Shown here one piece after another: positions 1,080 through 16,064 of a DNA stretch of 16,064 nucleotides. Origin of the DNA: Caecitellus pseudoparvulus. Taxonomy: Eukaryota; Protista; Bigyra: Bicosoecida. How positions within the stretch are numbered: position 1 is the stretch's first letter; each line of letters starts with the position of its first letter. Location of the stretch: contig CBFFRQ010000185.1 in the NCBI GenBank assembly GCA_965644315.1, forward strand, positions 1 through 16,064, in the 5' to 3' direction. A model generated the notes under the pieces. That model ran no database searches, was not told the DNA's origin, and was given only the letters and a program-made list of their open reading frames with translations. The translations under genes and the position numbers were made by a program.

Positions 1080-2921
1080 TCATGCGTGTAGGGAGCGGAT
1101 GTGGGTCTTGAGGTGCTCAGCCCGGCCAAACGCCTTGCCACAATGTGGGCAGTGGTGATCTTTGACGCCCTCATGCACGGTGCGGATGTGAGTCTTGAGG
1201 TCGCCAGCCTCGCCAAACGCCTTGCCACAGTGCGGACAGTGGTGGTCTCTGGCGCCCTCATGCACTGTGCAGATGTGCCGCTTGAGATTGCCAGCCGTGC
1301 CAAACGCCTTGTCACAGTGTGGGCAGTGGTGGTCTTTGGCACCCTCGTGCACAGTGCGGATATGCTTCGTGAGGCTGCCAGCCGTGCCAAACGCCTTGTC
1401 ACAGTGTGGGCAGTGGTGGTCTCTGACACCCTCGTGCACGGTGCGGATGTGGACCTTGAGATTGCCAGCCTGTCCAAATGCCTTGTCACAGTGCGGGCAG
1501 TAGTGATCCTTGGCCCCTTCATGCACGGTGCGGATGTGTCTCTTGAGGCTGCCAGCCTCGCTGAATGCCTTGTCGCAGTGTGGGCAGTGGTGGTCTTTGG
1601 CACCCTCGTGCACGGCGCGGATGTGTCTCTTGAGGTCGGCAGCCTGGCCAAATGTCTTGTCACAGTGTGGGCAGTGGTGTTCTCGCGCACCTTCATGCAC
1701 GGTGCGGATGTGGACCTTGAGATTGCCAGCCGTGCCAAACGCCTTGTCACAGTGTGGGCAGTGGTGATCCTTGGCGCCTTGATGCACGGTGCGGATGTGG
1801 ACCTTGAGATTGCCAGCCTGTCCAAATGCCTTGTCACAGTGCGGGCAGTAGTGATCCTTGGCCCCTTCATGCACGGTGCGGATGTGTCTCTTGAGGCTGC
1901 CAGCCTCGCTGAATGCCTTGTCGCAGTGTGGGCAGTGGTGGTCTCGCGCACCCTCATGCACAGTGCGGACATGTTTCCTCAGATACGCAGCTCCACTGAA
2001 GCTCTTCCCACATACAATGCACACCACACGACCCCCAGCACCTGCCCCCCCATGACACTCACGCCTGTGCTCCTCCACAGCACCCCACGACCCCAACACC
2101 ACATCGCACAGCATGCACCGAGGCACGCCCTGCACACGCGCTCCTGCGCCTCGCCCCACATCTGCCCTCGCCGCCCCAGCCATCTCCACCTCGCCCTCGC
2201 TCTCGCCCTCACCCTCATCACGCGGCATGCTCGTTCCCACATCGCCCATGGCGTCGCCCCCGTGCCCACTGCCGTCACGGCTGTCACTGCCCACCTCCTC
2301 ACATGACACCGTGCTGCCACCGTCGCTGTCAGTGCTGTCACTGTCCCACTCGCTGCCACTGCTGTGGCTCTCACCACCACGGCTGTCCTTGGCCCCACCC
2401 ACACCCACACACCCTCCCGCCCCCCACTCCTCACAGGTGCTTGACCCCCCACTGCTCGTCACCGCCAACCCGCCACAACTCGCTCCGCCACACCGACCAC
2501 CACCGACCACACCGACCACACCCACCTTCCACAGTACCGTGTTCGACACCGTCCCGACATGCCACTGTGCAGACCATGACGGCAGCTCACCCTGCAGTGC
2601 CGCGACGCCCGTGCGCGCCACGCCCTCCAGCCGCCCCACCTGCGCCGCTGACTCTCCACACACCTCGCCACCACGCCCTGCGCCAACGCTCTGACCGTCG
2701 CCACACAACGCGCCCCCACTACACCCCGCCACACCACCCGGCACCTCGCCAGCACACGCTGCACCACACTTCCTCTTGCAGGGACTGGCCTGGCCTCCCG
2801 CCAGCCTGCGCTTCGCGCCCCCCACGGCGCTCACCCTGCCCGCTTGCGTTGCAGGCGCTGCGCCGTGCCTCAAACTGCGCCGGCACGCCACGCCGGGCTG
2901 CCTCGTGCCCACGCAGCTCAT
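1080..2921 (-). CDS. C2H2 zinc-finger protein, 11 tandem fingers plus 1 divergent upstream finger (ZF gene 1)
   Basis: Repeated CPHCDKAF..AG.LK.HIRTVH with EGA(K/R)DH linker (C-x2-C-x12-H-x4-H). Start placed at ATG 2921 (MSCVGT) because it is conserved in all four copies. N-terminus is low-complexity Gly/Ser/acidic with an NLS-like KRR...KRK. Confidence 0.92.
   Translation of the reverse strand: MSCVGTRQPGVACRRSLRHGAAPATQAGRVSAVGGAKRRLAGGQASPCKRKCGAACAGEVPGGVAGCSGGALCGDGQSVGAGRGGEVCGESAAQVGRLEGVARTGVAALQGELPSWSAQWHVGTVSNTVLWKVGVVGVVGGGRCGGASCGGLAVTSSGGSSTCEEWGAGGCVGVGGAKDSRGGESHSSGSEWDSDSTDSDGGSTVSCEEVGSDSRDGSGHGGDAMGDVGTSMPRDEGEGESEGEVEMAGAARADVGRGAGARVQGVPRCMLCDVVLGSWGAVEEHRRECHGGAGAGGRVVCIVCGKSFSGAAYLRKHVRTVHEGARDHHCPHCDKAFSEAGSLKRHIRTVHEGAKDHYCPHCDKAFGQAGNLKVHIRTVHQGAKDHHCPHCDKAFGTAGNLKVHIRTVHEGAREHHCPHCDKTFGQAADLKRHIRAVHEGAKDHHCPHCDKAFSEAGSLKRHIRTVHEGAKDHYCPHCDKAFGQAGNLKVHIRTVHEGVRDHHCPHCDKAFGTAGSLTKHIRTVHEGAKDHHCPHCDKAFGTAGNLKRHICTVHEGARDHHCPHCGKAFGEAGDLKTHIRTVHEGVKDHHCPHCGKAFGRAEHLKTHIRSLHA
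1083..2021 (-). repeat. 87-bp coding minisatellite (11 zinc fingers)
   Basis: First Cys codons of finger 1 (2021) and finger 11 (1151) are exactly 10 x 87 bp apart. Confidence 0.95.
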
Positions 2922-3337
2922 GGTGGGAGTGGGGGGAAGGGCAGCAATGTGCAGTGTGATTCGTGTGCAGTGTGTGCTGTGTGTGGCTGGGAAGTGGTGT
3001 GCGGGGGGAAGTGTGGGGGGTGGGGCAGGAGAGACTCGCCGGCGAGCTGCTCGGGCTGCACGCTCGACTCCACACGCCCACGCCCAAGCCACCATTGCCC
3101 CCACGCCCCCACATCACACACGGCCACATGCACGCCAGCCGCCCACGAGCATGCTGCCGTGCATGGTCTGTACCTGGCTGCATCGCGGCGCACAGTGGAC
3201 TGCCCTGATCACGGGCCCGTCCCCAGCAGCACCCGCAACGCCGGCCGCGTTTCCACGGCGTTTCCCCACACCCATCCACAGCCCAGCCGCACACCTCCAC
3301 AGCACACTGACCACACGCCACACACACACATCTGGTC
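2922..3337. promoter_or_regulatory. Putative bidirectional promoter/5'-UTR region between ZF gene 1 (-) and small ORF copy 2 (+)
   Basis: Head-to-head start codons. Each ATG is preceded on its own sense strand by a CA-rich tract. The region is conserved at 5416-5829 and 10828-11266. No core promoter motif recognised. Confidence 0.5.
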
Positions 3338-3817
3338 ATGGCCGGGACCCCACACCAGGGCCCCGCTCTCGCTGGCCTCGCCGCCGGTGCAGCCGTGGCC
3401 ACGGGAGTGCACCTGGCGAGCCAAGCTGCCGGCACTGTTGCTGGCGCGGGCCTCAGCCTGGCATCCACCGCCATGACGGAGGGCACACGGGCAGTGGGCG
3501 GTGACGTGGCCGCGGCAGCTGTGGCAGGTGTGTGCGGTGCTGGGTGTGCCCTGGCCGCGACAGCTGCCAGCACCACCGGCACAGTGGCCAGTGCGGCGGC
3601 AGGCGCATTCACGTCCGTGGTGGTAACGGCTGCAGGCTCCGCGGCGCTGCATGGTGTGCGTGCGGCGAGCGCGGGTGTGGTGGGTGGTCAGGGCGGGCAT
3701 GGGGATGTGTGGAGGTGCGGGGGGGGGTGTCCGCTGTGGTGTGAGGTGGATGATGGGTATGTGTGTGTGTCTCGTCCGGGTGGGTGTGTGAGGGGCAGGA
3801 GCGGTGGAGAGGGATGA
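3338..3817 (+). CDS. 159-aa Ala/Gly-rich hydrophobic protein, copy 2
   Basis: ATG-to-TGA ORF nearly identical to 573-1052. Confidence 0.62.
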   Translation: MAGTPHQGPALAGLAAGAAVATGVHLASQAAGTVAGAGLSLASTAMTEGTRAVGGDVAAAAVAGVCGAGCALAATAASTTGTVASAAAGAFTSVVVTAAGSAALHGVRAASAGVVGGQGGHGDVWRCGGGCPLWCEVDDGYVCVSRPGGCVRGRSGGEG

Positions 3818-3843
3818 GTTGGTGTGCATTGTGGGCGTAGTGG

Positions 3844-5415
3844 TCATGCGTGTAGGGAGCGGATGTGGGTCTTGAGGTTGCCAGCCGTGCCAAACGTCTT
3901 GTCACAGTGTGGGCAGTGGTGGTCTCGGGCACCTTCGTGCACGGTGCGGATGTGGACCTTGAGATTGCCAGCCCGGCTGAAGGTCTTGTCACAGTGCGGA
4001 CAGTGGTGGTCTCTGGTGCCCTCATGCACGGTGCGGATGTGCCTGTTGAGGTTGCCAGCCGTGCCAAATGTCTTGTCGCAGTGCGGACAGTGGTGGTCTC
4101 GGGCGCCCTCATGCACGGTGCGGATGTGAGTCTTGAGGTTGTCAACCTGGCTGAAGGCCTTGTCGCAGTGCGGACAGTGGTGGTCTTTGGCACCCTCATG
4201 CACGGTGCGGATGTGTCTCTTGAGATGGCCAGCCACGGTAAATGCCTTGTCGCAGTGTGGGCAGTGGTGGTCTCTGGCGCCTTCATGGACGGTGCGGATG
4301 TGTGTGCTGAGGCTGCCTGCCTCGCCAAACCTCTTCTCACAGTGTGGGCAGTGGTGATCCTTGGCGCCTTGATGCACGGTGCGAATGTGGACCTTGAGGC
4401 TGCCAGCGTGCCCGAATGCCTTGTCACAGTGTGGGCAGTTGTGGTCTCTGGCGCCCTCATGCACAGTGCGGACATGTTTCCTCAGATACGCAGCTCCACT
4501 GAAGCTCTTCCCACACACAATGCACACCACACGACCCCCAGCACCTGCTCCCCCATGACACTCACGCCTGTGCTCCTCCACAGCACCCCACGACCCCAAC
4601 ACCACATCGCACAGCATGCACCGAGGCACGCCCTGCACACGCGCTCCTGCGCCTCGCCCCACATCTGCCCTCGCCGCCCCAGCCACCTCGCCCACGCCCT
4701 CGCCACGCGGCATGCTCGTTCCCACATCGCCCATGGCGTCGCCCCCGTGCCCACTGCCGTCACGGGTGCCGCTGCTCACCTCCTCACATGACACCGTGCT
4801 GCCACCGTCGCTGTCAGTGCTGTCACTGTCCCACTCGCTGTCACTGCTGTGCCTCCCGCCACCGCCACCGCACTCCTCGACACCACACACGCCCACGCCC
4901 ACACACCCTCCCGCCCCCCACTCCTCACAGGTGCTTGACCCCCCACTGCTCGTCACCGCCAACCCGCCACAACTCGCTCCGCCACACCGACCACCACCGA
5001 CCACACCGACCACACCCACCTTCCACAGTACCGTGTTCGACACCGTCCCGACATGCCACTGTGCAGACCATGACGGCAGCTCACCCTGCAGTGCCGCGAC
5101 GCCCGTGCGCGCCACGCCCTCCAGCCGCCCCACCTGCGCCGCTGACTCTCCACACACCTCGCCACCACGCCCTGCGCCAACGCTCTGACCGTCGCCACAC
5201 AACGCGCCCCCACTACACCCCGCCACCACGCCCGGCGCCTCGCCACCACACGCTGCGCCACACTTCCTCTTGCAGGGACTGGCCTGGCCTCCCGCCAGCC
5301 TGCGCTTCGCGCCCCCCACGGCGCTCACCCTGCCCGCTTGCGTTGCAGGCGCTGCGCCGTGCCTCAAACTGCGCCGGCACGCCACGCCGGGTTGCCTCGT
5401 GCCCACGCAGCTCAT
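3844..5415 (-). CDS. C2H2 zinc-finger protein, 8 tandem fingers plus 1 divergent finger (ZF gene 2)
   Basis: Paralog of gene 1 with a near-identical N-terminus. Eight C-x2-C-x12-H-x4-H repeats. ATG at 5415, TGA at 3844-3846. Confidence 0.92.
   Translation of the reverse strand: MSCVGTRQPGVACRRSLRHGAAPATQAGRVSAVGGAKRRLAGGQASPCKRKCGAACGGEAPGVVAGCSGGALCGDGQSVGAGRGGEVCGESAAQVGRLEGVARTGVAALQGELPSWSAQWHVGTVSNTVLWKVGVVGVVGGGRCGGASCGGLAVTSSGGSSTCEEWGAGGCVGVGVCGVEECGGGGGRHSSDSEWDSDSTDSDGGSTVSCEEVSSGTRDGSGHGGDAMGDVGTSMPRGEGVGEVAGAARADVGRGAGARVQGVPRCMLCDVVLGSWGAVEEHRRECHGGAGAGGRVVCIVCGKSFSGAAYLRKHVRTVHEGARDHNCPHCDKAFGHAGSLKVHIRTVHQGAKDHHCPHCEKRFGEAGSLSTHIRTVHEGARDHHCPHCDKAFTVAGHLKRHIRTVHEGAKDHHCPHCDKAFSQVDNLKTHIRTVHEGARDHHCPHCDKTFGTAGNLNRHIRTVHEGTRDHHCPHCDKTFSRAGNLKVHIRTVHEGARDHHCPHCDKTFGTAGNLKTHIRSLHA
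3847..4524 (-). repeat. 87-bp coding minisatellite (8 zinc fingers)
   Basis: First Cys codons at 4524 and 3915 are 7 x 87 bp apart. Confidence 0.95.
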
Positions 5416-5829
5416 GGTGGGAGTGGGGGGAAGGGCAGCAATGTGCAGTGTGATTCGTGTGCAGTGTGTGCTGTGTGTGGCTGGGAAGTGGTGTGCGGGG
5501 GGACGTGGGGGGGGGGGGGCAGGAGAGACTCGCCGGCGAGCTGCTCGGGCTGCACGCTCGACTCCACACGCCCACGCCCAAGCCACCATTGCCCCCACGC
5601 CCCCACATCACACACGGCCACATGCACGCCAGCCGCCCACGAGCATGCTGCCGTGCATGGTCTGTACCTGGCTGCATCGCGGCGCACAGTGGACTGCCCT
5701 GATCACGGGCCCGTCCCCAGCAGCACCCGCAACGCCGGCCGCGTTTCCACGGCGTTTCCCCACACCCATCCACAGCCCAGCCGCACACCTCCACAGCACA
5801 CTGACCACACGCCACACACACATCTGGTC
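5416..5829. promoter_or_regulatory. Copy of the putative bidirectional promoter; its + arm now points into the retrotransposon
   Basis: Near-identical to 2922-3337. Ends ...TCTGGTCAT, where the small-ORF ATG is cut (AT|A) by the element. Confidence 0.45.
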
Positions 5830-5831
5830 AT

Positions 5832-5950
5832 AGTCCCACGCTAGTGGCACAATTGTCCCCCGCCGCCCCAACGCAGAGTAGACGACGGCAGGACCGGGCA
5901 TGACAAAACCAGTCATTAGCCGGCCTCGTCACTCTCTTTCCTTTTTTTTC
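5832..5950 (+). repeat. Split direct repeat A1
   Basis: AGTCCCACGCTAGTGG...CTCTCTTTCC(T)nC matches 10518-10637 except for T-run length (8 vs 9). Confidence 0.95.
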
Positions 5951-5953
5951 GAG

Positions 5954-6886
5954 ATGGCATCGGATGATCCAGCTTCCAGCGACACGGAGGGCGGAAGCTG
6001 GGAGGACATCCACGACAAAATGATGTCTGTCAACTCCGCCAAGCAAGCCAAGGCGCTCATAACGGAGCAGGAGTTCGAGTACTGGCTGAAGTGGGCGGAT
6101 TCTGAGGATTTTGGTAAGATGGAGGCCGCTTGGCGCCTCCGGGAGGTGCCCGAGGGATTCCGGGCAGATCGCATGCGATCCCTCATTGCGGGCAGAGCTT
6201 TCCGCCTCCCCGCTGACGGTGCCCCTCATCGCGCAGGCGGCTCACCACGGGGGCACGGCACGAAGCGAACCCGTCCGCGCGGTGCGAGCAGTGGCACGCC
6301 CTACGGCCCGCACCTACCCCCGCGCCCGACCCAGCCGGACGCAGTCGCAGGCGACCTCCCGCAAGATCCCGCCACAGTGCTTACGTGGTTCCTGCAGAGG
6401 GGAGCGACGGTGCCGAGCGAGGACGTCGCCGTGCAGCTGCAGTTCTACGTGGGCTTGGCAACGGAGGAGACATCGCCGTACGCCCTCTCCGCTTGGCCTC
6501 CACGGCGCTTCGCCGCATGGTGCAGACTCAACGGTATTCCCCCCGACCTCACCCCCGACGACATCGTGATGCATTTGCAGCGGGTCCTGGAGGCCGCGCT
6601 GGCGGGCGACGACGACTTTGGCGACGACGATGCCGGCGCCCCGTTCTTTCCCGTTTTCCCGGGCACCACACCGGATGCCGCCCGGTTACAGCCCCGTGCG
6701 GCGGCCCCGGGTCACCCCCGGCCTCCAAGAGGCACAGGGCGGCCTATAGCCCGCAGCCCCCCCCTCCCCCGTGGGGCGGCGGAGCCTCGCCGGCAGTCCA
6801 CCCCGAAGGCGGGTCGGCTGTTTTCGGTCACATGGGGGAGAACAGCGGTCGGTCGTCGCCAGCCGACGAGGTACTGGTCACTGTAG
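5954..6886 (+). CDS. ORF1, putative Gag-like protein, N-terminal part
   Basis: Assigned by position only: first ORF, ATG directly after A1, with an in-frame upstream ATG at 5900. Reads as globular/acidic up to ~6700. No CCHC knuckle seen. Confidence 0.55.
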   Translation: MASDDPASSDTEGGSWEDIHDKMMSVNSAKQAKALITEQEFEYWLKWADSEDFGKMEAAWRLREVPEGFRADRMRSLIAGRAFRLPADGAPHRAGGSPRGHGTKRTRPRGASSGTPYGPHLPPRPTQPDAVAGDLPQDPATVLTWFLQRGATVPSEDVAVQLQFYVGLATEETSPYALSAWPPRRFAAWCRLNGIPPDLTPDDIVMHLQRVLEAALAGDDDFGDDDAGAPFFPVFPGTTPDAARLQPRAAAPGHPRPPRGTGRPIARSPPLPRGAAEPRRQSTPKAGRLFSVTWGRTAVGRRQPTRYWSL

Positions 6887-7239
6887 GCGCGCTGCGGGTC
6901 ATTGGGCCGACCGCACACCCCTCGTCGGCGGTGGCCCGGGACCGCCTGTCAGCCTTGGGGGCAGTTTTCGCTGCGGGGACCACAGACGCCTTGACCACGG
7001 TGGCTGTCGAGATGGCTGAGGCTGCTGCACGAGAGGTGCCCGCAGCAACGGGCCCAGTGCCGTTGCGCCGGACCCACACAGTCGGAGGTAAGCCCGCAGA
7101 ACTTACCCAGGCGCAGGCAGTGGCCATGCTGGTGCGCCAGTGGGAGCGGAAGGTGGCATCCAAGGGACGTGACTTCCAGCGGCGCATGCAGCCCCGCGCT
7201 GTCACCACGGCCATGGTGGAGGCAGCTCTCAGCCTCTAG
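6385..7239 (+). CDS. Overlapping -1 frame: probable continuation of ORF1 or N-terminal extension of pol (likely coding from ~6700-6760)
   Basis: Helical-looking protein after ~6760. Same frame as the RT ORF, separated from it by one TAG (7237-7239). Confidence 0.5.
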   Translation: MVPAEGSDGAERGRRRAAAVLRGLGNGGDIAVRPLRLASTALRRMVQTQRYSPRPHPRRHRDAFAAGPGGRAGGRRRLWRRRCRRPVLSRFPGHHTGCRPVTAPCGGPGSPPASKRHRAAYSPQPPPPPWGGGASPAVHPEGGSAVFGHMGENSGRSSPADEVLVTVGALRVIGPTAHPSSAVARDRLSALGAVFAAGTTDALTTVAVEMAEAAAREVPAATGPVPLRRTHTVGGKPAELTQAQAVAMLVRQWERKVASKGRDFQRRMQPRAVTTAMVEAALSL

Positions 7240-7242
7240 GAG

Positions 7243-9003
7243 GTGGGCCGGAGCGCGGTGGTGAGAGCGACCACGGGGTACCGGGCCGTGCCCGTGGAGT
7301 GGAGGGCTGCCGCCCCGCTCTCGACAGACCACCGCGCCATGGCCGTGCTCATCGAATCAATGGTCCAGCAGCTGCATGGGGACCGTTGTTGGACTCCACC
7401 GGGGCTCTTCGAGGACATCTTGCGTGGGGGCTTGGACTGGGGCCCCCACCCCGTGGTCTCATACTGGGGTTGCCAGGAGGCCCACGCTGACGTGTGTCCC
7501 GCATGCGGCGAGACCACTTCCAGATTACGGCAGCTTGAGCGGTGCGCAGCCATGCGACTGCTCACCGTGGTCACGCTGCGCGGGTGGGACCCCGCTTGGC
7601 TGCTGTTCCGCCGCCCCCCGGCAGCGGCATCCCCGTCCTCGGCATACGTGCTGCAGCCGCACGACGAGCGGGCGGTGGCAGCGGCCTATGACGCCTTCGC
7701 GGCTGCGCGCGTGCTGCAGCCGGTCACCCCCCAGCAGCTGCAGCAGCACCGAAAGATGGGGGGGCCAGCCGCTTCTGCCTTCGTTGTCACGACATGGGCC
7801 CCCCAGCCGGGCGTCAGCGACGAAGCTCTGCGACAGTGGGCTGCTGCGAACCCAGGCGAGGCGGTGCAGGCCGCCAGCTCTTCCCGCGCGCCCGCCCGCC
7901 CGAGCCGCCTGTTCCGGGCCAAGCAGCGGGTGGTGTACGATCTGGCAGCCGTCAACCAGGCCTCAGTGAGCCCCCCATTCCACTACCCCACGCTGGAGAG
8001 CTGGGCGCTGCGCCTCCCGCCGAACTCGGACTGTGTTGTCCTGGACGTGGAAGCAGGGTACACGGCCATCCCCATCGCTCCGTCGGGCGCCGGACTGTTC
8101 ACCATGCTCGCCCAGGGCAGGCCAGCCTTCCGCATGCTTCGGATGGCCTTCGGGTACAGCCCGGCCGGGGCCATTTTCTGCTTTTTTTCTGGACTTCTGG
8201 GCGCCAAGATCGAAGCGGCGTTCCCAGCAGGGCATGTGGTTGTGTACGTAGACGACGTCGGGCTTGGGGGAGCTACGTTGGGGCCACGGCCATCGATCGT
8301 GCCCAAGATAACTCAACTGTTCGAGGACGTGGGCTTCCGGGTGTCGCGCAAGAAGACGCAAGGGCCACAGCGCGTCGTTCAGTACTTGGGGATGGTGGTC
8401 AGGTGTGCCCCGTGTGGGGTGTACCTTGAGTGTCCTCAAGCCAAACGAACTCAGCTGCGGTGGCAGCTGGCCGCGGTCCTTAATCGCCTCGGCGCTTGCT
8501 CCACCATCCCCAAGCGCGTTTTCGCCGCGGTCACAGGGCGCTTGCACGGCCTGTCGGCCGTGGTGCCCCACGCAAAACAAACGCTGTCGCTCTTGTACGA
8601 CACCATGCGCACACACAAGTACCGCGTCGGCCCCCCGGCGCTCTCGTGCCTGTCCCCCCGGCGTCGCACGGGGCCCTGCGGACCCTCCTTGAGGCCCTCG
8701 GTGGGCCGTTATCGACGGGCCCGATGCGCCCGCTCTCCCCACTGTCAAGCAGGTGGCGCGCCGCCCTCTTTGGCTCGTGCGACGCGTCGGGGGAAGGCGG
8801 GCTGGGGGCAACAGTGTCGAGGTGGGCAGGGCCAGGAGAACGCACAGACTCCGCTTGGTACGCGTCCATGCGCATCCCCGGCACAGCCCCGGGCGAGGAG
8901 CTCGTGGGAGCCTCCACGATGCTGGAGCTGTACGCAATCGCCTTGGCTATGGCAATGGCGCGGCATGTTTTTCCCGAGCCGGGGCCGCTGCTGCTATGCC
9001 TAG
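7243..9003 (+). CDS. Reverse transcriptase (DIRS/Ngaro type); meaningful frame ends ~8635
   Basis: RT motifs in order: KQRVVYDLAAVN, LDVEAGY, RMAFGYSPA, YVDD (8245-8256), GFRVSRKK, YLG. Confidence 0.93.
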   Translation: MGRSAVVRATTGYRAVPVEWRAAAPLSTDHRAMAVLIESMVQQLHGDRCWTPPGLFEDILRGGLDWGPHPVVSYWGCQEAHADVCPACGETTSRLRQLERCAAMRLLTVVTLRGWDPAWLLFRRPPAAASPSSAYVLQPHDERAVAAAYDAFAAARVLQPVTPQQLQQHRKMGGPAASAFVVTTWAPQPGVSDEALRQWAAANPGEAVQAASSSRAPARPSRLFRAKQRVVYDLAAVNQASVSPPFHYPTLESWALRLPPNSDCVVLDVEAGYTAIPIAPSGAGLFTMLAQGRPAFRMLRMAFGYSPAGAIFCFFSGLLGAKIEAAFPAGHVVVYVDDVGLGGATLGPRPSIVPKITQLFEDVGFRVSRKKTQGPQRVVQYLGMVVRCAPCGVYLECPQAKRTQLRWQLAAVLNRLGACSTIPKRVFAAVTGRLHGLSAVVPHAKQTLSLLYDTMRTHKYRVGPPALSCLSPRRRTGPCGPSLRPSVGRYRRARCARSPHCQAGGAPPSLARATRRGKAGWGQQCRGGQGQENAQTPLGTRPCASPAQPRARSSWEPPRCWSCTQSPWLWQWRGMFFPSRGRCCYA

Positions 9004-9458
9004 CTGCGGACAGCCAGGCAGCGGTGGCGCTGGCGCGACGAGGGTACAGCAAGCACAGCCGTGAACTCACGCGCGTCTGCGGGGTCCTCGAGCGGGTTTC
9101 CCGCGTTTTGGACGTCCACTTGGCGCCTCGGTGGATCCCGAGGAGCCTGAATTGGCGGGCGGACGCCCTCAGCCACCCCGAAAGGGTGGATAGCAGCACA
9201 CCGGCAGCGCTCGGCCTCCCGCCAGGGCAACCAGCCGAGCTGGAGGTATCAGCAGGGGGAAGCAGCGCCGCTGAGCGGTGGCATGATGTGTCCCTAGACG
9301 TAGGGCCGTCGGGAAAGGCCGGGGCGGGCACCGCGTGGATTCACTCAGCTCAACTCTCCGTCGCCCTGCACAGACACACTCTGGATAAGGAAGCAGACCT
9401 TCTGGCAGATGATCAGGGCCATCCCCGCGTCCCCGATCAGCAGGATTCACCAACATAG
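8496..9458 (+). CDS. RNase H domain of pol, in the -1 frame relative to RT (effective from ~8635)
   Basis: Catalytic D-E-D-D motifs: CDASGEGGLG (D 8781), LELYAI (E 8925), ADSQAAVA (D 9009), WIPRSLNWRADALS (D 9162). Confidence 0.9.
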   Translation: MLHHPQARFRRGHRALARPVGRGAPRKTNAVALVRHHAHTQVPRRPPGALVPVPPASHGALRTLLEALGGPLSTGPMRPLSPLSSRWRAALFGSCDASGEGGLGATVSRWAGPGERTDSAWYASMRIPGTAPGEELVGASTMLELYAIALAMAMARHVFPEPGPLLLCLAADSQAAVALARRGYSKHSRELTRVCGVLERVSRVLDVHLAPRWIPRSLNWRADALSHPERVDSSTPAALGLPPGQPAELEVSAGGSSAAERWHDVSLDVGPSGKAGAGTAWIHSAQLSVALHRHTLDKEADLLADDQGHPRVPDQQDSPT

Positions 9459-10278
9459 GCTGGCAAAGGGGACGGTGGTCAAGTACGTTCGCGCGGTTGC
9501 TGGCCTGATCAGGGCCGCTCCAGCACCCCGGGACAGGGCGCGGACCATGGTGGGCATCTTAACGGGCGGCGTGGCCGCAGGCAGATGGGCCCCCCATCGG
9601 GCGAAGCAGATCCTGGCGCAATGGGTCGGTGGTTTTAGGTATCTGGGCCTGCCAATCCCGTCGCTAGCCCCGCTGGGGCTCACAGTCGGCAGCATCTGCC
9701 GGGCAATCCGCCGGCTCCACCGAGGGAGAGGGGAGCAACACCGCCGCCCTATCAGCAAAGAACAAGTCATGGAGGCCATGAAGCGGGCATGGGACGGGCC
9801 ACACCTCGGGAGGCATGCCCCAACTGCCGCCGCAGCTATCTACATCGGCTTTCATGGCATGTGCAGGCCGGGAGAGCTCCGGGGCCTGCGATGGGAGGAG
9901 TTGCACTTCGGGCGGGCGGGCCCCCTGCAGTGGGTGGAGGCCAGGGTCACGGATAAAACGCACCTGAGTGCAAACCGCCACATCCAGGTGGTGCGCCAGG
10001 CCGAGTGGGCGGGGGCCTTCGACCGCCTCCGGGAGCAGGCCCGGGACAAGCGGGGAAGCCTGCTCCCAAGGTGGGCGTGGCTCAGCCTGCAAGGCATCCT
10101 GAAGGCTGTAGCGGGCGTGTCCTTGGCCCACCTGAGACCCGGGGGCAATATGTTCTGGACAGGCCGGGCCCCCGACGTCTTGGTGGAGCACGCGGCGGGC
10201 TGGGCGGCTGGCTCCCCCACCCGGGCACGATACTACACCCAGGGGGGGAGGGGGCGAGGCTGTGGCACGAGGCCATGA
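9409..10278 (+). CDS. Tyrosine recombinase (true C-terminus may run to TGA 10302-10304)
   Basis: GFHGMCRPGEL (R 9865), DKT (K 9955), AHLRPGG (R 10135), AGW (W 10201), RYY (Y 10231/10234). Overlaps the end of the RNase H ORF, as is usual in YR retrotransposons. Confidence 0.9.
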   Translation: MIRAIPASPISRIHQHRLAKGTVVKYVRAVAGLIRAAPAPRDRARTMVGILTGGVAAGRWAPHRAKQILAQWVGGFRYLGLPIPSLAPLGLTVGSICRAIRRLHRGRGEQHRRPISKEQVMEAMKRAWDGPHLGRHAPTAAAAIYIGFHGMCRPGELRGLRWEELHFGRAGPLQWVEARVTDKTHLSANRHIQVVRQAEWAGAFDRLREQARDKRGSLLPRWAWLSLQGILKAVAGVSLAHLRPGGNMFWTGRAPDVLVEHAAGWAAGSPTRARYYTQGGRGRGCGTRP

Positions 10279-10309
10279 CACCCAGGGGAGGAAGCAAGCA
10301 TTGAAAAGT

Positions 10310-10460
10310 ATTGGCGGGTGCCGCAAGGAGGCGTCCCCTCCCCCAAGAGATGCAGCGAGCCCTGGTGGCCGCTGGCATAGAGGGGGGAGGGGACGGCCTC
10401 GAGGCGGGCCCAGTTCAATGCATTTCGATTGCCACGCACAACGCACCAACACGAGGGAAC
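10310..10460 (+). repeat. Split direct repeat B1 (151 bp)
   Basis: ATTGGCGGGTGCCG...ACGAGGGAAC; no difference from 10647-10797 found by eye. Confidence 0.95.
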
Positions 10461-10517
10461 CGAGGTTGCCGGCACCCCAGCCGGCAACCATGTTTCCCGG
10501 CAGGAGGGGCGGCGGGC

Positions 10518-10637
10518 AGTCCCACGCTAGTGGCACAATTGTCCCCCGCCGCCCCAACGCAGAGTAGACGACGGCAGGACCGGGCATGACAAAACCAGTC
10601 ATTAGCCGGCCTCGTCACTCTCTTTCCTTTTTTTTTC
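10518..10637 (+). repeat. Split direct repeat A2
   Basis: Copy of 5832-5950. Confidence 0.95.
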
Positions 10638-10646
10638 TTTTTCTCG

Positions 10647-10797
10647 ATTGGCGGGTGCCGCAAGGAGGCGTCCCCTCCCCCAAGAGATGCAGCGAGCCCT
10701 GGTGGCCGCTGGCATAGAGGGGGGAGGGGACGGCCTCGAGGCGGGCCCAGTTCAATGCATTTCGATTGCCACGCACAACGCACCAACACGAGGGAAC
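10647..10797 (+). repeat. Split direct repeat B2 (element 3' end)
   Basis: Copy of 10310-10460. The last 2 nt (AC) are shared with the resuming host sequence ACGCCGGGCTGCC. Confidence 0.95.
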
Positions 10798-10827
10798 GCC
10801 GGGCTGCCTCGTGCCCACGCAGCTCAT
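10796..10827 (-). pseudogene. Stub of a fourth ZF paralog (only MSCVGTRQPGV remains)
   Basis: ATG at 10827 and ~11 codons match ZF genes 1/2. The frame then runs into antisense B2/A2 and stops at 10615. Confidence 0.8.
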
Positions 10828-11266
10828 GGTGGGAGTGGGGGGAAGGGCAGCAGTGTGCAGTTTGTCTGGTGTGTTGCATGTGATGTGTGCAGTGTGTGGC
10901 TGGGAAGTGGTGCGCGGGGGGAAGTGTGGGGGGGGGCAGGAGAGACTCGCCGGCGAGCTGCTCGGGCTGCACGCTCGACTCCACGCACCCAGCCCCAAGC
11001 CACCATTGCCCCCACGCCCCCACATCACACACGGCCACCTGCACGCCAGCCGCCCACAAGCATGCTGCCGTGCATGGTCTGCGCTTGGCTGCATCGCGGC
11101 GCACAGTGGACTGCCCTGATCACGGGCCCGTCCCCCAGCAGCACCCGCAACGCCGGCCGCGTTTCCACGGCGTTTCCTCACACCCATCCACAGCCCACCC
11201 GCACACCTCCACAGCACACTGACCACACGCCACGCGCCACACGCCACACGCCACACACACCTGGGC
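10828..11266. promoter_or_regulatory. Diverged copy of the putative bidirectional promoter
   Basis: Homologous to 2922-3337 with indels (10853-10895; expanded CCACACG repeat at 11223-11260). Confidence 0.45.
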
Positions 11267-11743
11267 ATGGCCGGGACCCCACACCAGGGCCCCGCTCTCG
11301 CTGGCCTCGCCGCCGGTGCAGCGGTGGCCACGGGAGTGCACCTGGCGAGCCAAGCTGCCGGCACTGTTGCTGGCGCGGGCCTCAGCCTGGCATCCACCGC
11401 CATGACGGAGGGCACACGGGCAGTGGGCGGTGACGTGGCCGCGGCAGCTGTGGCAGGTGTGTGTGGTGCTGGGTGTGCCCTGGCCGCGACAGCCGCCAGC
11501 ACCACCGGCACAGTGGCCAGTGCGGCGGCAGGCGCTGTCACGTCCGTGGTGGTGACGGCTGTAGTCTCTGCGGCGCTGCATGGTGTGCGTGCGGCGAGCG
11601 CGGGTGTGGTGGGTGGTCAGGGCGGGCATGGGGATGTGTGGAGGTGCGGGGGGGGGTGTCCGCTGTGGTGTGAGGTGGATGATGGGTATGTGTGTGTGTC
11701 TCGTCCGGGTGGGTGTGTGGGGGGTGGGGGTGGCGTGGGGTGA
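11267..11743 (+). CDS. 158-aa Ala/Gly-rich hydrophobic protein, copy 3
   Basis: ATG-to-TGA ORF. Frame is preserved, with a net 3-bp shortening near the C-terminus. Confidence 0.62.
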   Translation: MAGTPHQGPALAGLAAGAAVATGVHLASQAAGTVAGAGLSLASTAMTEGTRAVGGDVAAAAVAGVCGAGCALAATAASTTGTVASAAAGAVTSVVVTAVVSAALHGVRAASAGVVGGQGGHGDVWRCGGGCPLWCEVDDGYVCVSRPGGCVGGGGGVG

Positions 11744-11769
11744 GGTGGTATGCATTGTGGGTATGATCG

Positions 11770-14700
11770 TCATGCGTGTAGGGAGCGGGTGTGCTTCTTG
11801 AGGTCGCCAGCTCTTCCAAATGTCTTGCCACAGTGCGGACAGTGGTGATCTTTGACGCCTTCATGGACGGTGCGGATGTGGGTCTTGAGGTGGCCAGCTC
11901 TTCCAAAGGTCTTGTCACAGTGTGGGCAGTGGTGATCTTTGACACCCTCATGTACGGTGCGGATGTGTCTCTTGAGGTCGCCAGCCTCGCTGAATGCCTT
12001 GTCGCAGTGTGGGCAGTGGTGGTCTCGCGCACCCTCATGGACGGTGCGGATGTGTCTCTTGAGATTGCCAGCCTTGCTGAAGCTCTTCCCACATACAATG
12101 CACACCACACGACCCCCAGCACCTGCCCCCCCATGACACTCACGCCTGTGCTCCTCCACAGCACCCCACGACCCCAACACCACATCGCACAGCATGCACC
12201 GAGGCACGCCCTGCACACGCGCTCCTGCGCCTCGCCCTACATCTGCCCTCGCCGCCCCAGCCATCTCCACCTCGCCCACGCCCTCGCCCGCGCCACGCGG
12301 CATGCTCGTTCCCACATCGCCCATGGCGTCGCCCCCGTGCCCACTGCCGTCACGGGTGCCGCTGCTCACCTCCTCACATGACACCGTGCTGCCACCGCTG
12401 TCGCTGCCACTGCTGTCACTGTCCCACTCGCTGCCACTGCTGTGGCTCCTGCCACCATCATCGCCCCTGCACTCCTGGTCTTGACTCTCGTCCACGTAAG
12501 TACACATGCCAGGCTCCCTAACGCTGCCACCCTCCACGTCATCCCCGTCATCACTACTTCCATCGCCAAAGGACGACCTCGCCTGCACACTTCCACTCAC
12601 AGAGTTTTCCACCCACCCCACATCGACACGCTCACCCGCATCCGCCTCCCACTCCTCGGTGCTGCTGGACCCGCCGCTGCTCGTCCCTCCATGGGCCGAG
12701 CTGGGTTGCTGCCTGGGCTCCGTCCGTGACCCCGAGCACCAACGCTCCATCACTGACTGCCGCTCACGCCACAGCCGTGCATGTGCCTCCATGGCAGGTG
12801 AGCCCGGTACACGTTCGCCCGCCACACTTCCATTTATCGAAATTGAGTGTCGCAATGGATGCACGGCACCCATCGATGAGCTCTCACCCTGCAAGGACAA
12901 GTCTGTGCACCAATTGTGTGTCGCAGAGAAGCGCAGTGGCAGTCCGGGTCGGCACCGAAGTGCATGAAGCACTCCGTGATCCTTGACATGATCTTGAACG
13001 GCAGAAGTCTTCGGGCTGAACAGAGCAAGACGAGACATAGAGAAGGCAAGAGATGGCACGCTTCCACCACTGCCTGCACTCGGTAGCCGTGACCATGGCC
13101 CTACCGAGAGACCCCCACTTGACGAAGGAGCAGAGTTCCCGAACCCAAAGAGTTCAGCCGGCATCCTTGCCTCCATGAATCCCAAATCACCACTGTCCCC
13201 CGCTTCGCGCATTCGGCCTAAGGCGGCTCGCTGGGCAGAATACACCACTGGTCCAACACCGCCTTGCTTGCCAGTATCAAGTGCATCTGTCAGACCCTCA
13301 GTCACTGACCCATTCGTGCACGCATACTGGACAGCAAGTGTTTTGCGAGCTTGCCTCCTCTCAGTCCGCCGGCATAACCGAGCGCCCTCTTCACCCACCG
13401 CACGAGTGTTCGCCTCCATCACACTCTCAACACCCTCTAGCATGCCCTTCACCCACGCCAACCACCAACCACATGCATCCGACACACTCATACTGCCGCC
13501 GCTAACCCCATCATCACCCACCACCTCACTCCCACCGTCCTGCAACGCATCCCTCACACTCACGTGAAACGGTGCTTCCACACTCACAGCACTGCTCGTA
13601 CCACCCCCGCCACGCTCACACCGACAATCACACCCCAGCGGCGGGATGGGGTATGGCACTGCCGCCTTCCCCACACCGCCCGCCCCCGCCGGCCACACCA
13701 CCGGCACCCACTGCCCACTGAGTTCCTGCAGGTCCAGGCCCAGGCTTCGCTTGCACGACTCGGACACCCGCTGTCCCGTCCCAGACGCCACGCGCAGCAG
13801 CCACGCCTCCTCGGTCATGGACGCCGGGTGCATGAAGTGCCCTCCGACGCCCACCTCCTCCGCCCCGTGCAGCCACGCCGTTGTCTGATCTCCCCAGCAC
13901 CACACCAGCCAATCACCTACCTGCACATGGTGATTGGAAACAGCAGCCCATGGTACCATGTGTCCCGTCGTTACCACGGAGATGCCCGATGACACGTTAG
14001 ACCGATGGAACACTCCCTCGCCAGGGTAGAGTGCCTCCATATACTCCTGAACACCCTCGTCGCTCACTGACTCGTGCAGCACGTGCACCACGCCCGCACT
14101 CCGCATTTGCTCGGCTGAGTGCTTGTCAAAATCTGCCTGCACACACCGCAAGTGGAACTGCACAATGCGCAAGTGCCAGTTCATGATGCTGACCATGCAG
14201 GCTGGCAGGCCGCCGCCGCCGCCTGCGTCCAACCCTGCCTCAGCAGCCGCTGCCGACCCCAGCTCATCCGCACCACCCCCCACGCTGCAGCACCAGGCAA
14301 AGGCACACCCACTCCATGCCGCCGGACGATGCACAACCCGCCCCCCTGCCTTGCCCAGTGCAGCAACACCCGCTCGCCCCTCCACTGTCATCCACGACAC
14401 CACACGCAGGCGCACATCCTCCGGCACTGATGCGTCACACACCCCCTCCGCACACTCCCGCTCCGCCATACTGCACATGCCAGGCTGCATACCCGAGAGC
14501 TCAAGCACATGTGCCGGGCTCATGACGACGCCAAAGATCGCCATGAACGCCTGGGCGGCCATGACACTGTCCGCCACACTCTTTACGCCCCACGCCTCTC
14601 GCTCACGCTCCGCAGCCCAGGCCCCCTTCTCCGCCTGCGCCGACACCTGCGGCATCACATCCTCGTACAACCCATGCTCCGAGTATGGGTACACCTGCGC

Positions 14701-15997
14701 ACACACGCCACGCCGACACCCTTGCCAGAACACGCAACGCAGCCGCCTCAGCCGCTCACTCACCTTCCGACGCCGGGCCTGCCGCCACGCCAGGTAGTCG
14801 TACGCATTCTCCTCTGCCAGGCAGTGATACCGCCGCTGCAAACAGCTCAGACATGAACATTTGCCCGCTTCTGCCGCCGGCACACACCTTTTGCCGTGGT
14901 ACCCAGTCCCGTGCCCGTGCTTATCCTCACGTGCCCGACTCTCGCTCACCAGGCGTTCCAAGTCTCGAGGGCGGAAGGCCCGCTCACCGTAGACAGCCGG
15001 GTCCAGGTGAGGCAGCAGCCCTCCCCTCTCCGTCGCCTCCATGTGCGCCACCAGTGCCTCCGCCTTGGCCACGCCCTTGCAGAAGGCGTACGGTTCCACG
15101 TACGCCGAGCACTCACGCAGGCCTGCCAAGGCATCACTGTACTGCGGCGGCAGTGCATCACTCCCACCCTCCACCGCCACCTTCACGAAGATCAACACCG
15201 TCGCACAGTGCAGCGCAGCATGTGGGGACAGAGCCGGGTGCGCCAGGCTTGCCAATACTCGCCGCTTCTGCGACGGGCGGGTGAGCAAGCGAGGAGAGGC
15301 GTGGCAAAGCTGCCGCCCGGTACGTGGCCGATGCGCCCACGCACAAGGATCCATGACCACGATATGCTTCCTGTCGCTAAGCACATCTGCAGCAGCCGCT
15401 TCACTCTCGGATGTAGGATGGAGCTCCGGAAGCCCAGAAAAGACACATCCTGCGCAGCAACACACACGCCACCAGGGCGCAACTCGATCCATGACACCGA
15501 CGATGGCACCCAGCACCGCCCACACCCACCTTCCACAGTGACACGTCCTCCCATCCCAAGCCCTGCGCACGCCCAGCGCACGCCCTCCCTGTGGACTGCG
15601 GCCCCAACACACAAACACCGCCGCCGCCGTCACACCACTCCGCCATGCCACGCACCTTCGGCATGTCCGACACCGTCCGCGGACGCCACTGTGCAGACAG
15701 TGCTCGCGGCTCACCGTGCAGTGCCGCGAAGCCCGTGCGCTTCACGCCCTCCAACCGCTCCACCTGCGCCGCTGACTCTCCACACTCCTCGCCACCACGC
15801 CCTGCGCCCACGCTCTGACCGTCGCCAGCACACGCTGCGCCACACTTCCTCTTGCAGGGACTGGCCTGGCCTCCCGCCAACCTGCGCTTCGCGCCCCCCA
15901 CGGCGCTCACCCTGCCCGCCTGCGTTGCAGGCGCTGCAGCGTGCCTCAAACTGCGCCGGCACGCCACGCCGGACTGACTCGTGCCCACACAGCTCAT
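11770..15997 (-). CDS. Large C2H2 zinc-finger protein (4 tandem plus 1 divergent finger) with a ~900-aa unassigned central region; spliced (ZF gene 3)
   Basis: Open frame 11770-15714 ends in fingers. The homologous N-terminus MSCVGTSQSG starts at ATG 15997 in another frame. Removing GT..AG 15714-15450 joins the two in frame. Confidence 0.8.
11773..12102 (-). repeat. 87-bp coding minisatellite (4 zinc fingers)
   Basis: First Cys codons at 12102 and 11841 are 3 x 87 bp apart. Confidence 0.93.
15450..15714 (-). other. Predicted spliceosomal intron region of ZF gene 3 (one 265-nt intron, or three introns of 26, 60 and 80 nt)
   Basis: Donor G|GTGAGC at 15714 and acceptor TTGCTGCGCAG| at 15450, both phase 1. 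Internal sites CACAG| 15689, AAG|GTGCGT 15655, CGCAG| 15596 and AAG|GTGGGT 15529 are also all phase 1. Confidence 0.6.
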
Positions 15998-16064
15998 GAT
16001 GACTGTGGGAGGAGGCAATGTGCATTGTTGGGCGTGCAGTGTGATCAATGTGCGGTGTGTGCAG

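Follow-up and report, generated by a model that had tools for sequence, protein, structure and literature searches.

Can zinc-finger arrays that vary both in their DNA-contact residues and in their number of units, so far documented mainly in the animal KRAB-ZFP and PRDM9 genes, also arise outside animals? The question is raised by the window analysed here, a stretch of 16,064 bp that is the entire contig C185 of a 30.6-Mb genome (215 contigs, about 65% GC). Three long open frames lie on its minus strand (1080-3104, 3844-5598 and 11770-15714), each ending in exact 87-bp tandem repeats that encode 29 amino acids (aa). A sequence-only reading of this DNA had described them as tandem C2H2 zinc-finger genes from a probable protist. 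The HSP90 of the host shares 73-75% identity with the proteins of oomycetes and diatoms, and 99% with one marine metagenome protein; because it is closest to oomycetes and diatoms, the host can be assigned to the marine stramenopiles rather than to the animals, in keeping with the probable protist of the sequence-only reading. Our analysis suggests that the three genes quite probably belong to a family of about 14 genes, tandemly duplicated and specific to the lineage of this marine stramenopile, that encode sequence-specific DNA-binding poly-zinc-finger proteins whose mode of evolution would resemble, in a non-animal, that of the KRAB zinc-finger proteins (KZFPs). The genes and their fingers are given below (CDS, coding sequence; ZF0 and ZF1, leader fingers; CPHC, type of the array fingers; three-letter groups, contact triplets).

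1080-2921, minus strand: gene 1, probable CDS of 613 aa, supported by a conserved ATG and the indel pattern; frame open up to 3104
1086-1934, minus strand: gene 1 array, ten 87-bp CPHC units (ESR QNV TNV QDR ESR QNV TSK TNR EDT RHT)
1956-2117, minus strand: gene 1 leader fingers, ZF1 at 1956-2021 (GYK) and the invariant ZF0 at 2052-2117
3844-5415, minus strand: gene 2, probable CDS of 523 aa, supported by a conserved ATG; frame open up to 5598
3850-4620, minus strand: gene 2 fingers, seven CPHC units at 3850-4437 (HSV EST VHR QNT TNR RNV TNT), ZF1 at 4459-4524 (GYK) and ZF0 at 4555-4620
11770-15714, minus strand: gene 3 open frame of 1314 aa, an extension of about 1,000 aa followed by an acidic stretch, ZF0, ZF1 and three CPHC fingers
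11776-12198, minus strand: gene 3 fingers, three CPHC units at 11776-12015 (EDR RHT RDK), ZF1 at 12037-12102 (KNR) and ZF0 at 12133-12198

A whole-genome search extended the tandem C2H2 family seen in the window to 14 leader-bearing genes (three each on C185 and C215, two each on C178 and C38, one each on C57, C47, C208 and C160) and 133 CPHC-type fingers, together with one detached 3' gene half. Close paralogues carry from 3 to 17 fingers in total. The genes are arranged head-to-tail in units of ~2.76 kb, each of which also contains a small plus-strand open reading frame (ORF), and copies are found at four or more anchored loci. Tandem-finger junctions (PF13465) were counted 122 times genome-wide: 118 lie in the family, where the matches fall under the curated cut-off, and the other 4 in a single gene at C41:83136-83654. 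This gene, the only other one in the genome with tandem C2H2 junctions, has two of its four matches above the Pfam cut-off and shares 36% identity with the family; it probably encodes a zinc-finger factor of the conventional, conserved kind.

All 133 CPHC fingers follow the pattern C-x2-C-x12-H-x4-H and are joined by a seven-residue linker, EGA(K/R)DHH. With the contact positions -1, +3 and +6 placed at residues 10, 13 and 16 from the first cysteine, and the first histidine at +7, the 23 contact triplets listed by the sequence-only reading were all exactly reproduced (11/11 for gene 1, 8/8 for gene 2 and 4/4 for gene 3). The finger region of each gene opens with a non-canonical leader finger, ZF0, which that reading had left uncounted and which is near-identical in 14 of the 14 genes, and continues with a distinct ZF1. 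The Pfam zf-C2H2 profile (PF00096) matched genes 1, 2 and 3 with E = 6e-58, 2e-40 and 1e-20, respectively. In the three window proteins no non-finger Pfam domain was matched, and no KRAB, SET, ZAD (PF07776) or FiNZ; all their Pfam matches are to finger families, in line with the earlier description of arrays without SET or KRAB. The best matches among solved structures were DNA-bound arrays, CTCF (9e-49) and ZFP568 (2.5e-43), and also Aart and PRDM9. A phenylalanine at index 7 and a leucine at +4 are nearly invariant in the family fingers. Compared with the TGEKP type, the linker is likewise conserved and seven residues long and retains the glycine and the lysine, but lacks the threonine and the proline. 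Judged by their ligand pattern and core residues, the family members belong to the classical C2H2 finger class.

The variation among these fingers is concentrated at the residues expected to contact DNA. Over all pairs of the 133 fingers, nonsynonymous diversity (pN) was 0.52 at the three contact codons versus 0.075 at the other 26, and amino-acid entropy reached 2.2-2.5 bits at -1, +3 and +6 but did not exceed 1.45 bits at any other position, so that the near-fixed scaffold with variable contacts claimed earlier for the window holds throughout the family. At the four zinc ligands pN was 0, their codons varying synonymously. Seventy distinct contact triplets occur among the 133 fingers, composed of T, E, Q, R and H (rarely K, V, I, G or A) at -1, of S, N, H, D and Y (also T) at +3, and of T, R, V, K, A and I at +6. 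In the C2H2 recognition code, R/Q/E/T at -1 and H/N/D/S at +3 specify G/A/C/T. The alphabets at -1 and +3 match all four bases of this canonical code, which fits a base-reading role of these positions as far as sequence can indicate. Proline, leucine, tryptophan, phenylalanine, cysteine, methionine and stop codons were not found in any of the 399 contact codons, and the residues never seen would result from 37-60% of the one-step nonsynonymous changes at these codons. This confinement to base-reading residues argues against a neutral origin of the pattern by minisatellite dynamics, according to which unequal exchange of 87-bp units and short-tract conversion would act on contact sites that are merely unconstrained within the tolerance of the fold, in a redundant family subject to drift. 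As a side observation, synonymous diversity over the 133 units varies greatly with codon position: it almost vanishes at codons 5, 10 and 18, approaches saturation at the two-fold codons 7, 21 and 22, and shows no linkage from one part of the unit to another. Either short-tract conversion between units or nucleotide-level constraint on some silent sites is indicated.

The arrays change much faster than the DNA around them. DNA identity between genes 1 and 2 is 97.8% ahead of ZF0, 98.5-99% across ZF0/ZF1 and 97.6% in the 3' flank, but drops to 88.1% in the CPHC arrays, where the alignment contains 265 gap letters, equal to three units. The only triplets common to both genes are GYK and TNR; the divergent arrays within near-identical flanks that the sequence-only reading reported for this pair are borne out (~98% versus 88%). 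Gene 3 and its twin on C178 show the same tendency: synonymous divergence (pS) is 0.048 in the flank and 0.23 in the array scaffold, five times the flank value, while contact pN reaches 0.33 and 8 of the 12 contact residues differ. Since selection on amino acids cannot raise synonymous divergence, these values argue that whole units or short tracts were exchanged with other family members, and much of the array divergence is whole-unit exchange rather than point substitution. The earlier claim of fast array change stands in that arrays outpace flanks. Within gene 1, units 2 and 6 have 100% DNA identity and another pair of units differs only in a patch of the linker. In C178 five adjacent units, and in C57 four, share about 97% identity: nearly all their differences fall on contact codons, some of which have changed at three bases, and the codons between these are identical. 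Such interleaved, contact-only differences call for selection against homogenisation at the reading positions, or for selection favouring new variants there.

These observations are difficult to reconcile with an ordinary family of transcription factors, that is, old and stable regulators of host genes whose likeness to PRDM9 and the KZFPs would be superficial. Genes with ~98% identical flanks that differ in finger number and share two triplets would not be expected of such a family, nor would the range of 3 to 17 fingers among close paralogues or adjacent units ~97% identical that differ only at contact codons. Stable regulators would account for the high mean synonymous divergence between units (pS about 0.4-0.46, for a mean unit identity of about 80-85%), which indicates that most units are not recent copies, and for the triplets kept in five of ten orthologous fingers in the collinear block described below. 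On the whole we consider this explanation very unlikely.

We propose instead that the family encodes proteins with a weakly constrained N-terminus of ~270 residues, two leader fingers and 1 to 15 fingers built on a fixed 29-residue frame. The frame is held by purifying selection (omega, the ratio of nonsynonymous to synonymous change, being about 0.14), the contact positions change at or above the synonymous rate, and the arrays evolve several times faster than their flanks through the addition and loss of 87-bp units and their exchange, both within a gene and from gene to gene, combined with change of contact codons. Because the contact residues vary on a fixed frame, we infer that paralogues recognise different DNA sequences; selection would favour the diversity of the reading positions, or at least protect it against homogenisation. 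In a codon model on the tree of units, a separate omega for the contact codons beat a single omega (likelihood ratio test, LRT = 258), with a scaffold omega of about 0.14. Contact omega was 3.1 when the tree excluded the contact codons; a tree built without these codons biases the estimate up, and one built with them biases it down. Point estimates from held-out trees ranged from 0.9 to 1.4, from a fit that did not converge (negative LRTs). Contact nonsynonymous diversity (piN) exceeded the synonymous diversity (piS) of the interleaved codons +1, +2, +4 and +5 by a factor of 2.2 (gene-level bootstrap 1.65-3.08), that of the helix neighbourhood by 1.8 (1.38-2.31) and that of all other finger codons by 1.31 (1.14-1.45). 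Pairs of nearest-neighbour units picked on non-contact sites gave omega values of 1.7-2.6, a design dropped as biased by ascertainment when compared with the held-out pairs described next.

Several results weigh against the proposal. Contact omega fell to 1.00 when the tree of units included the contact codons, and the unbiased pair designs, in which close units were picked on one codon set and synonymous change was measured on another, gave 1.05-1.2. Two paralogues have ten fingers in collinear order; in this block, contact pN (0.17) was lower than pS (0.26), a ratio of 0.65, and the triplet was kept in 5 of the 10 positional orthologues; some finger specificities thus appear to be conserved between paralogues. 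Unit pairs at least 98% alike on 20 codons still showed a pS of 0.23 on the other six. As similarity on the 20 codons fails to predict the remainder, the units are mosaic, no single tree is valid for them and tree-based tests become unreliable. With a linker that departs from the canonical TGEKP and a glycine at +2 in almost every finger, the proteins may not read DNA by the canonical code. No family member was found in the protein catalogues searched, transcript-derived ones included, and one marine metatranscriptome yielded contigs of 41-88 nt, matching arrays only, for which carry-over of DNA is possible. Finally, the 14 arrays were converted into a position weight matrix (PWM) with textbook recognition rules and scanned against the retroelement described below, virophage-like DNA, the sequence upstream of the family's own genes and three stretches of host DNA. 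This crude scan pointed to no preferred target, top z-scores being 2.6-3.4 in every target, controls included; the enrichment in transposable elements, among them the 'Ngaro' element of the window, that the sequence-only reading had suggested looking for was not seen, the retroelement, the virophage-like DNA and the host controls scoring equally.

Taken together, the rate of change at the contact positions equals or exceeds the neutral one and is 7-10 times that of the frame. A strict dN/dS above 1 at the contact residues is not robust, the estimate moving from 1.0 to 3.1 with the choice of neutral reference. The excess over the scaffold that the sequence-only reading expected from a site-wise dN/dS analysis is clear, but its stronger form depends on this reference. 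The neutral minisatellite explanation draws on the same numbers: a contact omega of about 1.0-1.2 in the unbiased designs, raised synonymous divergence within arrays, mosaic units and several genes already broken by insertions would all be expected under it. It does not explain why contact piN is about twice the piS of the interleaved codons, why some triplet blocks are kept between paralogues, or why conversion that homogenises codons 10, 11, 13 and 14 does not reach codons 9, 12 and 15, as it should; nor does it account for the absence of six amino acids and of stops from the contact codons. We regard purely neutral dynamics as possible but unlikely, and diversifying selection within a functional alphabet as likely, though not proven.

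The extent of the proteins was delimited from comparisons between paralogues. GC3 profiles failed to separate coding from non-coding in this GC-rich DNA. A conserved in-frame ATG (peptide MSCVGT...) is found 250-278 codons upstream of ZF0 in 9 of the 14 paralogues. Over the ~270 codons upstream of ZF0 the frame is preserved despite many indels of 3-48 bases, which are multiples of three or compensated, while farther upstream the indels between paralogues break it. This frame-keeping zone and the conserved ATG place the likely CDS at 2921-1080 for gene 1 and 5415-3844 for gene 2. The N-terminal region of ~270 residues is of low complexity and weakly constrained (pN/pS about 0.4-1.2), is probably disordered, and ends in an acidic stretch rich in serine, aspartate and glutamate whose length varies among paralogues. 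Neither stops nor frameshifts were seen in any family array; like the preserved N-terminal frame, the conserved start codon and the triplets kept in five of ten positional orthologues, this speaks for functional genes. In gene 3 and its twin on C178, about 1,000 further residues precede this region in the same frame. Over 1181 codons upstream of ZF0 the two copies show a pS of 0.048, a pN of 0.023, an omega of 0.48 and one in-frame indel, and omega falls to 0.23 in the best-conserved part of the extension. The extension had no match in Pfam, PHROG or Atlas, and its single-sequence AlphaFold model, with a mean pLDDT of 35, was unusable. Upstream of gene 3, at 15401-16048 on the minus strand, the start typical of the family (MSCVGT...) recurs in a frame that differs from the 1314-aa ORF, and the C178 twin has the same layout of start and frame. 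Gene 3 would therefore have an intron, a frameshift or another start.

Outside this genome, only the fingers have recognisable relatives in the collections searched. The best matches of gene 1 in public protein collections were at most 51% identical and covered fingers only, and a five-finger fragment used as query gave at most 60% identity. The N-terminal region was matched only through ZF0/ZF1 among 1.84 billion representative proteins, and by generic fingers only among public metagenome contigs; such a lack of N-terminal orthologues is a further point against old, stable transcription factors. The nearest matches come from AT-rich metagenomic proteins, whose fingers have this 29-residue H-x4-H unit too, with EGxKD in the linker. 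Since this unit is found elsewhere and, in the collections searched, the N-terminal region is not, the finger subtype is widespread and the family private to its lineage. Public contigs from other samples that match the window are Logan unitigs of 40-550 nt. Some of their joints bypass 439 or 526 nt, about five or six units, and carry 3-4 additional letters; these may stem from paralogues.

The family loci also accumulate mobile DNA. Two further features of the window are concerned, the element lying between the units of genes 2 and 3 and the small ORF duplicated with every unit:

5832-10796, plus strand: young reverse-transcriptase retroelement (the 'Ngaro' of the sequence-only reading), RVT_1 E = 1e-7, between gene 2 and the gene 3 unit
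3338-3817, plus strand: small ORF of about 159 aa, with copies at 573-1052 and 11267-11743, duplicated with every family unit

The small ORF is rich in glycine and alanine, measures 158-159 aa in two complete copies and is 95.6-97.6% identical in DNA among copies; it is convergent with the next finger gene and ends about 27 bp from the stop of that gene. Over a 2-kb probe, the retroelement has at least 23 copies with 99-100% identity; although no part of the finger family, it is repeatedly associated with it. Six of these copies lie in or beside family units (one each in the window, C178 and C160, and three in C215), at several positions of the unit. On C215 a reverse-oriented copy (1547-7312 in the piece of this contig examined) splits a 17-finger gene cleanly inside a linker (...EGARD, then HQ-C...), leaving the 5' half at 7385-8416 and the 3' half at 1127-1540. 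An extra segment of 57 nt stands there between the linker and the 5' end of the retroelement, and its last 30 letters are part of a 58-nt loose end that precedes window position 5832 in a marine metagenome contig. In the window, the retroelement has on either side (5384-5831 and 10796-11233) a copy of one and the same ~440-bp part of the family unit, the two copies sharing 92.5% identity; the flanks on C178 are roughly contiguous in unit coordinates. This flank pattern fits recombination between elements inserted in different units. On C208 (48520-56500), at least 8 kb of DNA with 22-30% GC truncates a family gene 41 codons upstream of ZF0; its genes, for an rve integrase with a chromodomain and for a DUF5906/primase-helicase protein, identify it as a virophage- or polinton-like endogenous element.

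By our estimate the family units make up roughly 0.13% of the genome, so that the excess of insertions in them is large, roughly hundred-fold, although small repeat-rich contigs may inflate it; the loci may be a regional hot spot of insertion or retention, or partly an artefact of such contigs. A landscape of retroelements and virophage-like elements in GC-rich host DNA matches the description of Cafeteria burkhardae, in the main text of which zinc fingers go unmentioned (PMC8547959). The position of the family on repeat-rich small contigs, beside retroelement and virophage-like insertions, and its copies at four or more anchored loci could suggest that a mobile or virus-derived element carries the finger gene as cargo, in which case the 2.76-kb unit would itself be mobile and its array would serve site-specific integration. 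The unit carries no transposase, integrase, reverse transcriptase or terminal repeats, and its copies stand head-to-tail with 65-70% GC like the host, unlike the 22-30% GC of the virophage-like element. Moreover, the retroelement is found at varied positions of the unit and once splits an array, which marks it as an invader and not as a partner. We therefore hold the cargo explanation to be extremely unlikely.

The targets of the arrays are a matter of speculation, as are the roles in transposon or virus surveillance or in recombination targeting that the sequence-only reading had considered: the targets could be host regulatory sites or invading DNA, such as the retroelement of the tyrosine-recombinase (YR) type, virophage-like elements or giant-virus DNA, and the acidic N-terminal stretch might serve as an effector. 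In its boldest form, the proposal would have the family serve genome defence in a heterotrophic marine stramenopile, as a KZFP-like recognition arm that evolved independently; its paralogues would be re-targeted by unit shuffling and contact-codon change against the young YR retroelements, the AT-rich virophage-like elements and perhaps the giant-virus DNA present in this genome, with the acidic stretch as effector. We put this forward tentatively, as a rather improbable extension; if it were true, arms-race evolution of zinc-finger arrays would not be an animal invention. The insertions piling up in the family loci make this single-celled organism a tractable system for asking whether rapid evolution of zinc fingers is linked to mobile DNA, and if the proteins bind DNA as predicted, they would constitute a natural set of fingers with one scaffold and many specificities.

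In a survey by Najafabadi et al., non-animal C2H2 fingers were found to diversify little, and diversification was put down to features of metazoan fingers (PMC5588721). With 70 triplets among 133 fingers, and differences in finger number despite ~98% identical flanks, the stramenopile family is a counter-example to this view at the level of sequence. Its mode of evolution is KZFP/PRDM9-like in several tested respects, namely clustered tandem paralogues, a fixed frame, variable reading residues, turnover of units and retroelement-rich loci. Lacking KRAB and SET domains, it is not a member of either family. As in the KRAB-ZFP clusters of tetrapods, its genes are tandem poly-C2H2 genes with a fixed frame, variation at -1, +3 and +6 and gain or loss of fingers between young paralogues, in clusters that accumulate retroelements. 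The KRAB-ZFPs differ by their KRAB domain with its TRIM28-type partner, by a 28-aa unit with TGEKP where the family has 29 aa, H-x4-H and EGA(K/R)DHH, and by their hundreds of genes in animals compared with 14 in this stramenopile, for which what has been seen is the co-location of retroelements with the clusters. Contact-site selection was described in KZFPs by Emerson and Thomas (PMC2604467). Mouse KZFP clusters are retrovirus-rich when young and accumulate retroelement insertions (PMC11952569), a parallel in genome organisation that says nothing on what the stramenopile proteins bind. PRDM9 offers a parallel for the runs of adjacent 87-bp units that are ~97% identical and differ almost only at contact codons, with units exchanged in the manner of a coding minisatellite. 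It is a single hypervariable locus whose units are above 95% identical and which carries PR/SET, KRAB and SSXRD domains, whereas the present family is multigenic, has a mean unit identity of about 80-85% and lacks these domains. The ZAD-ZNF genes of insects and the FiNZ-ZNF genes of cyprinid fish are likewise lineage-specific poly-zinc-finger expansions with a private N-terminal module and fast turnover, and expansions of this type have been tied to transposon load by Wells et al. (PMC10547256); the N-terminus of our family differs in being without a Pfam match and disordered in appearance, and its host in not being an animal. CTCF and ZFP568, canonical major-groove readers solved on DNA, provide the best structural-sequence matches, a likeness confined to the generic finger frame, without orthology and with different flanking domains.

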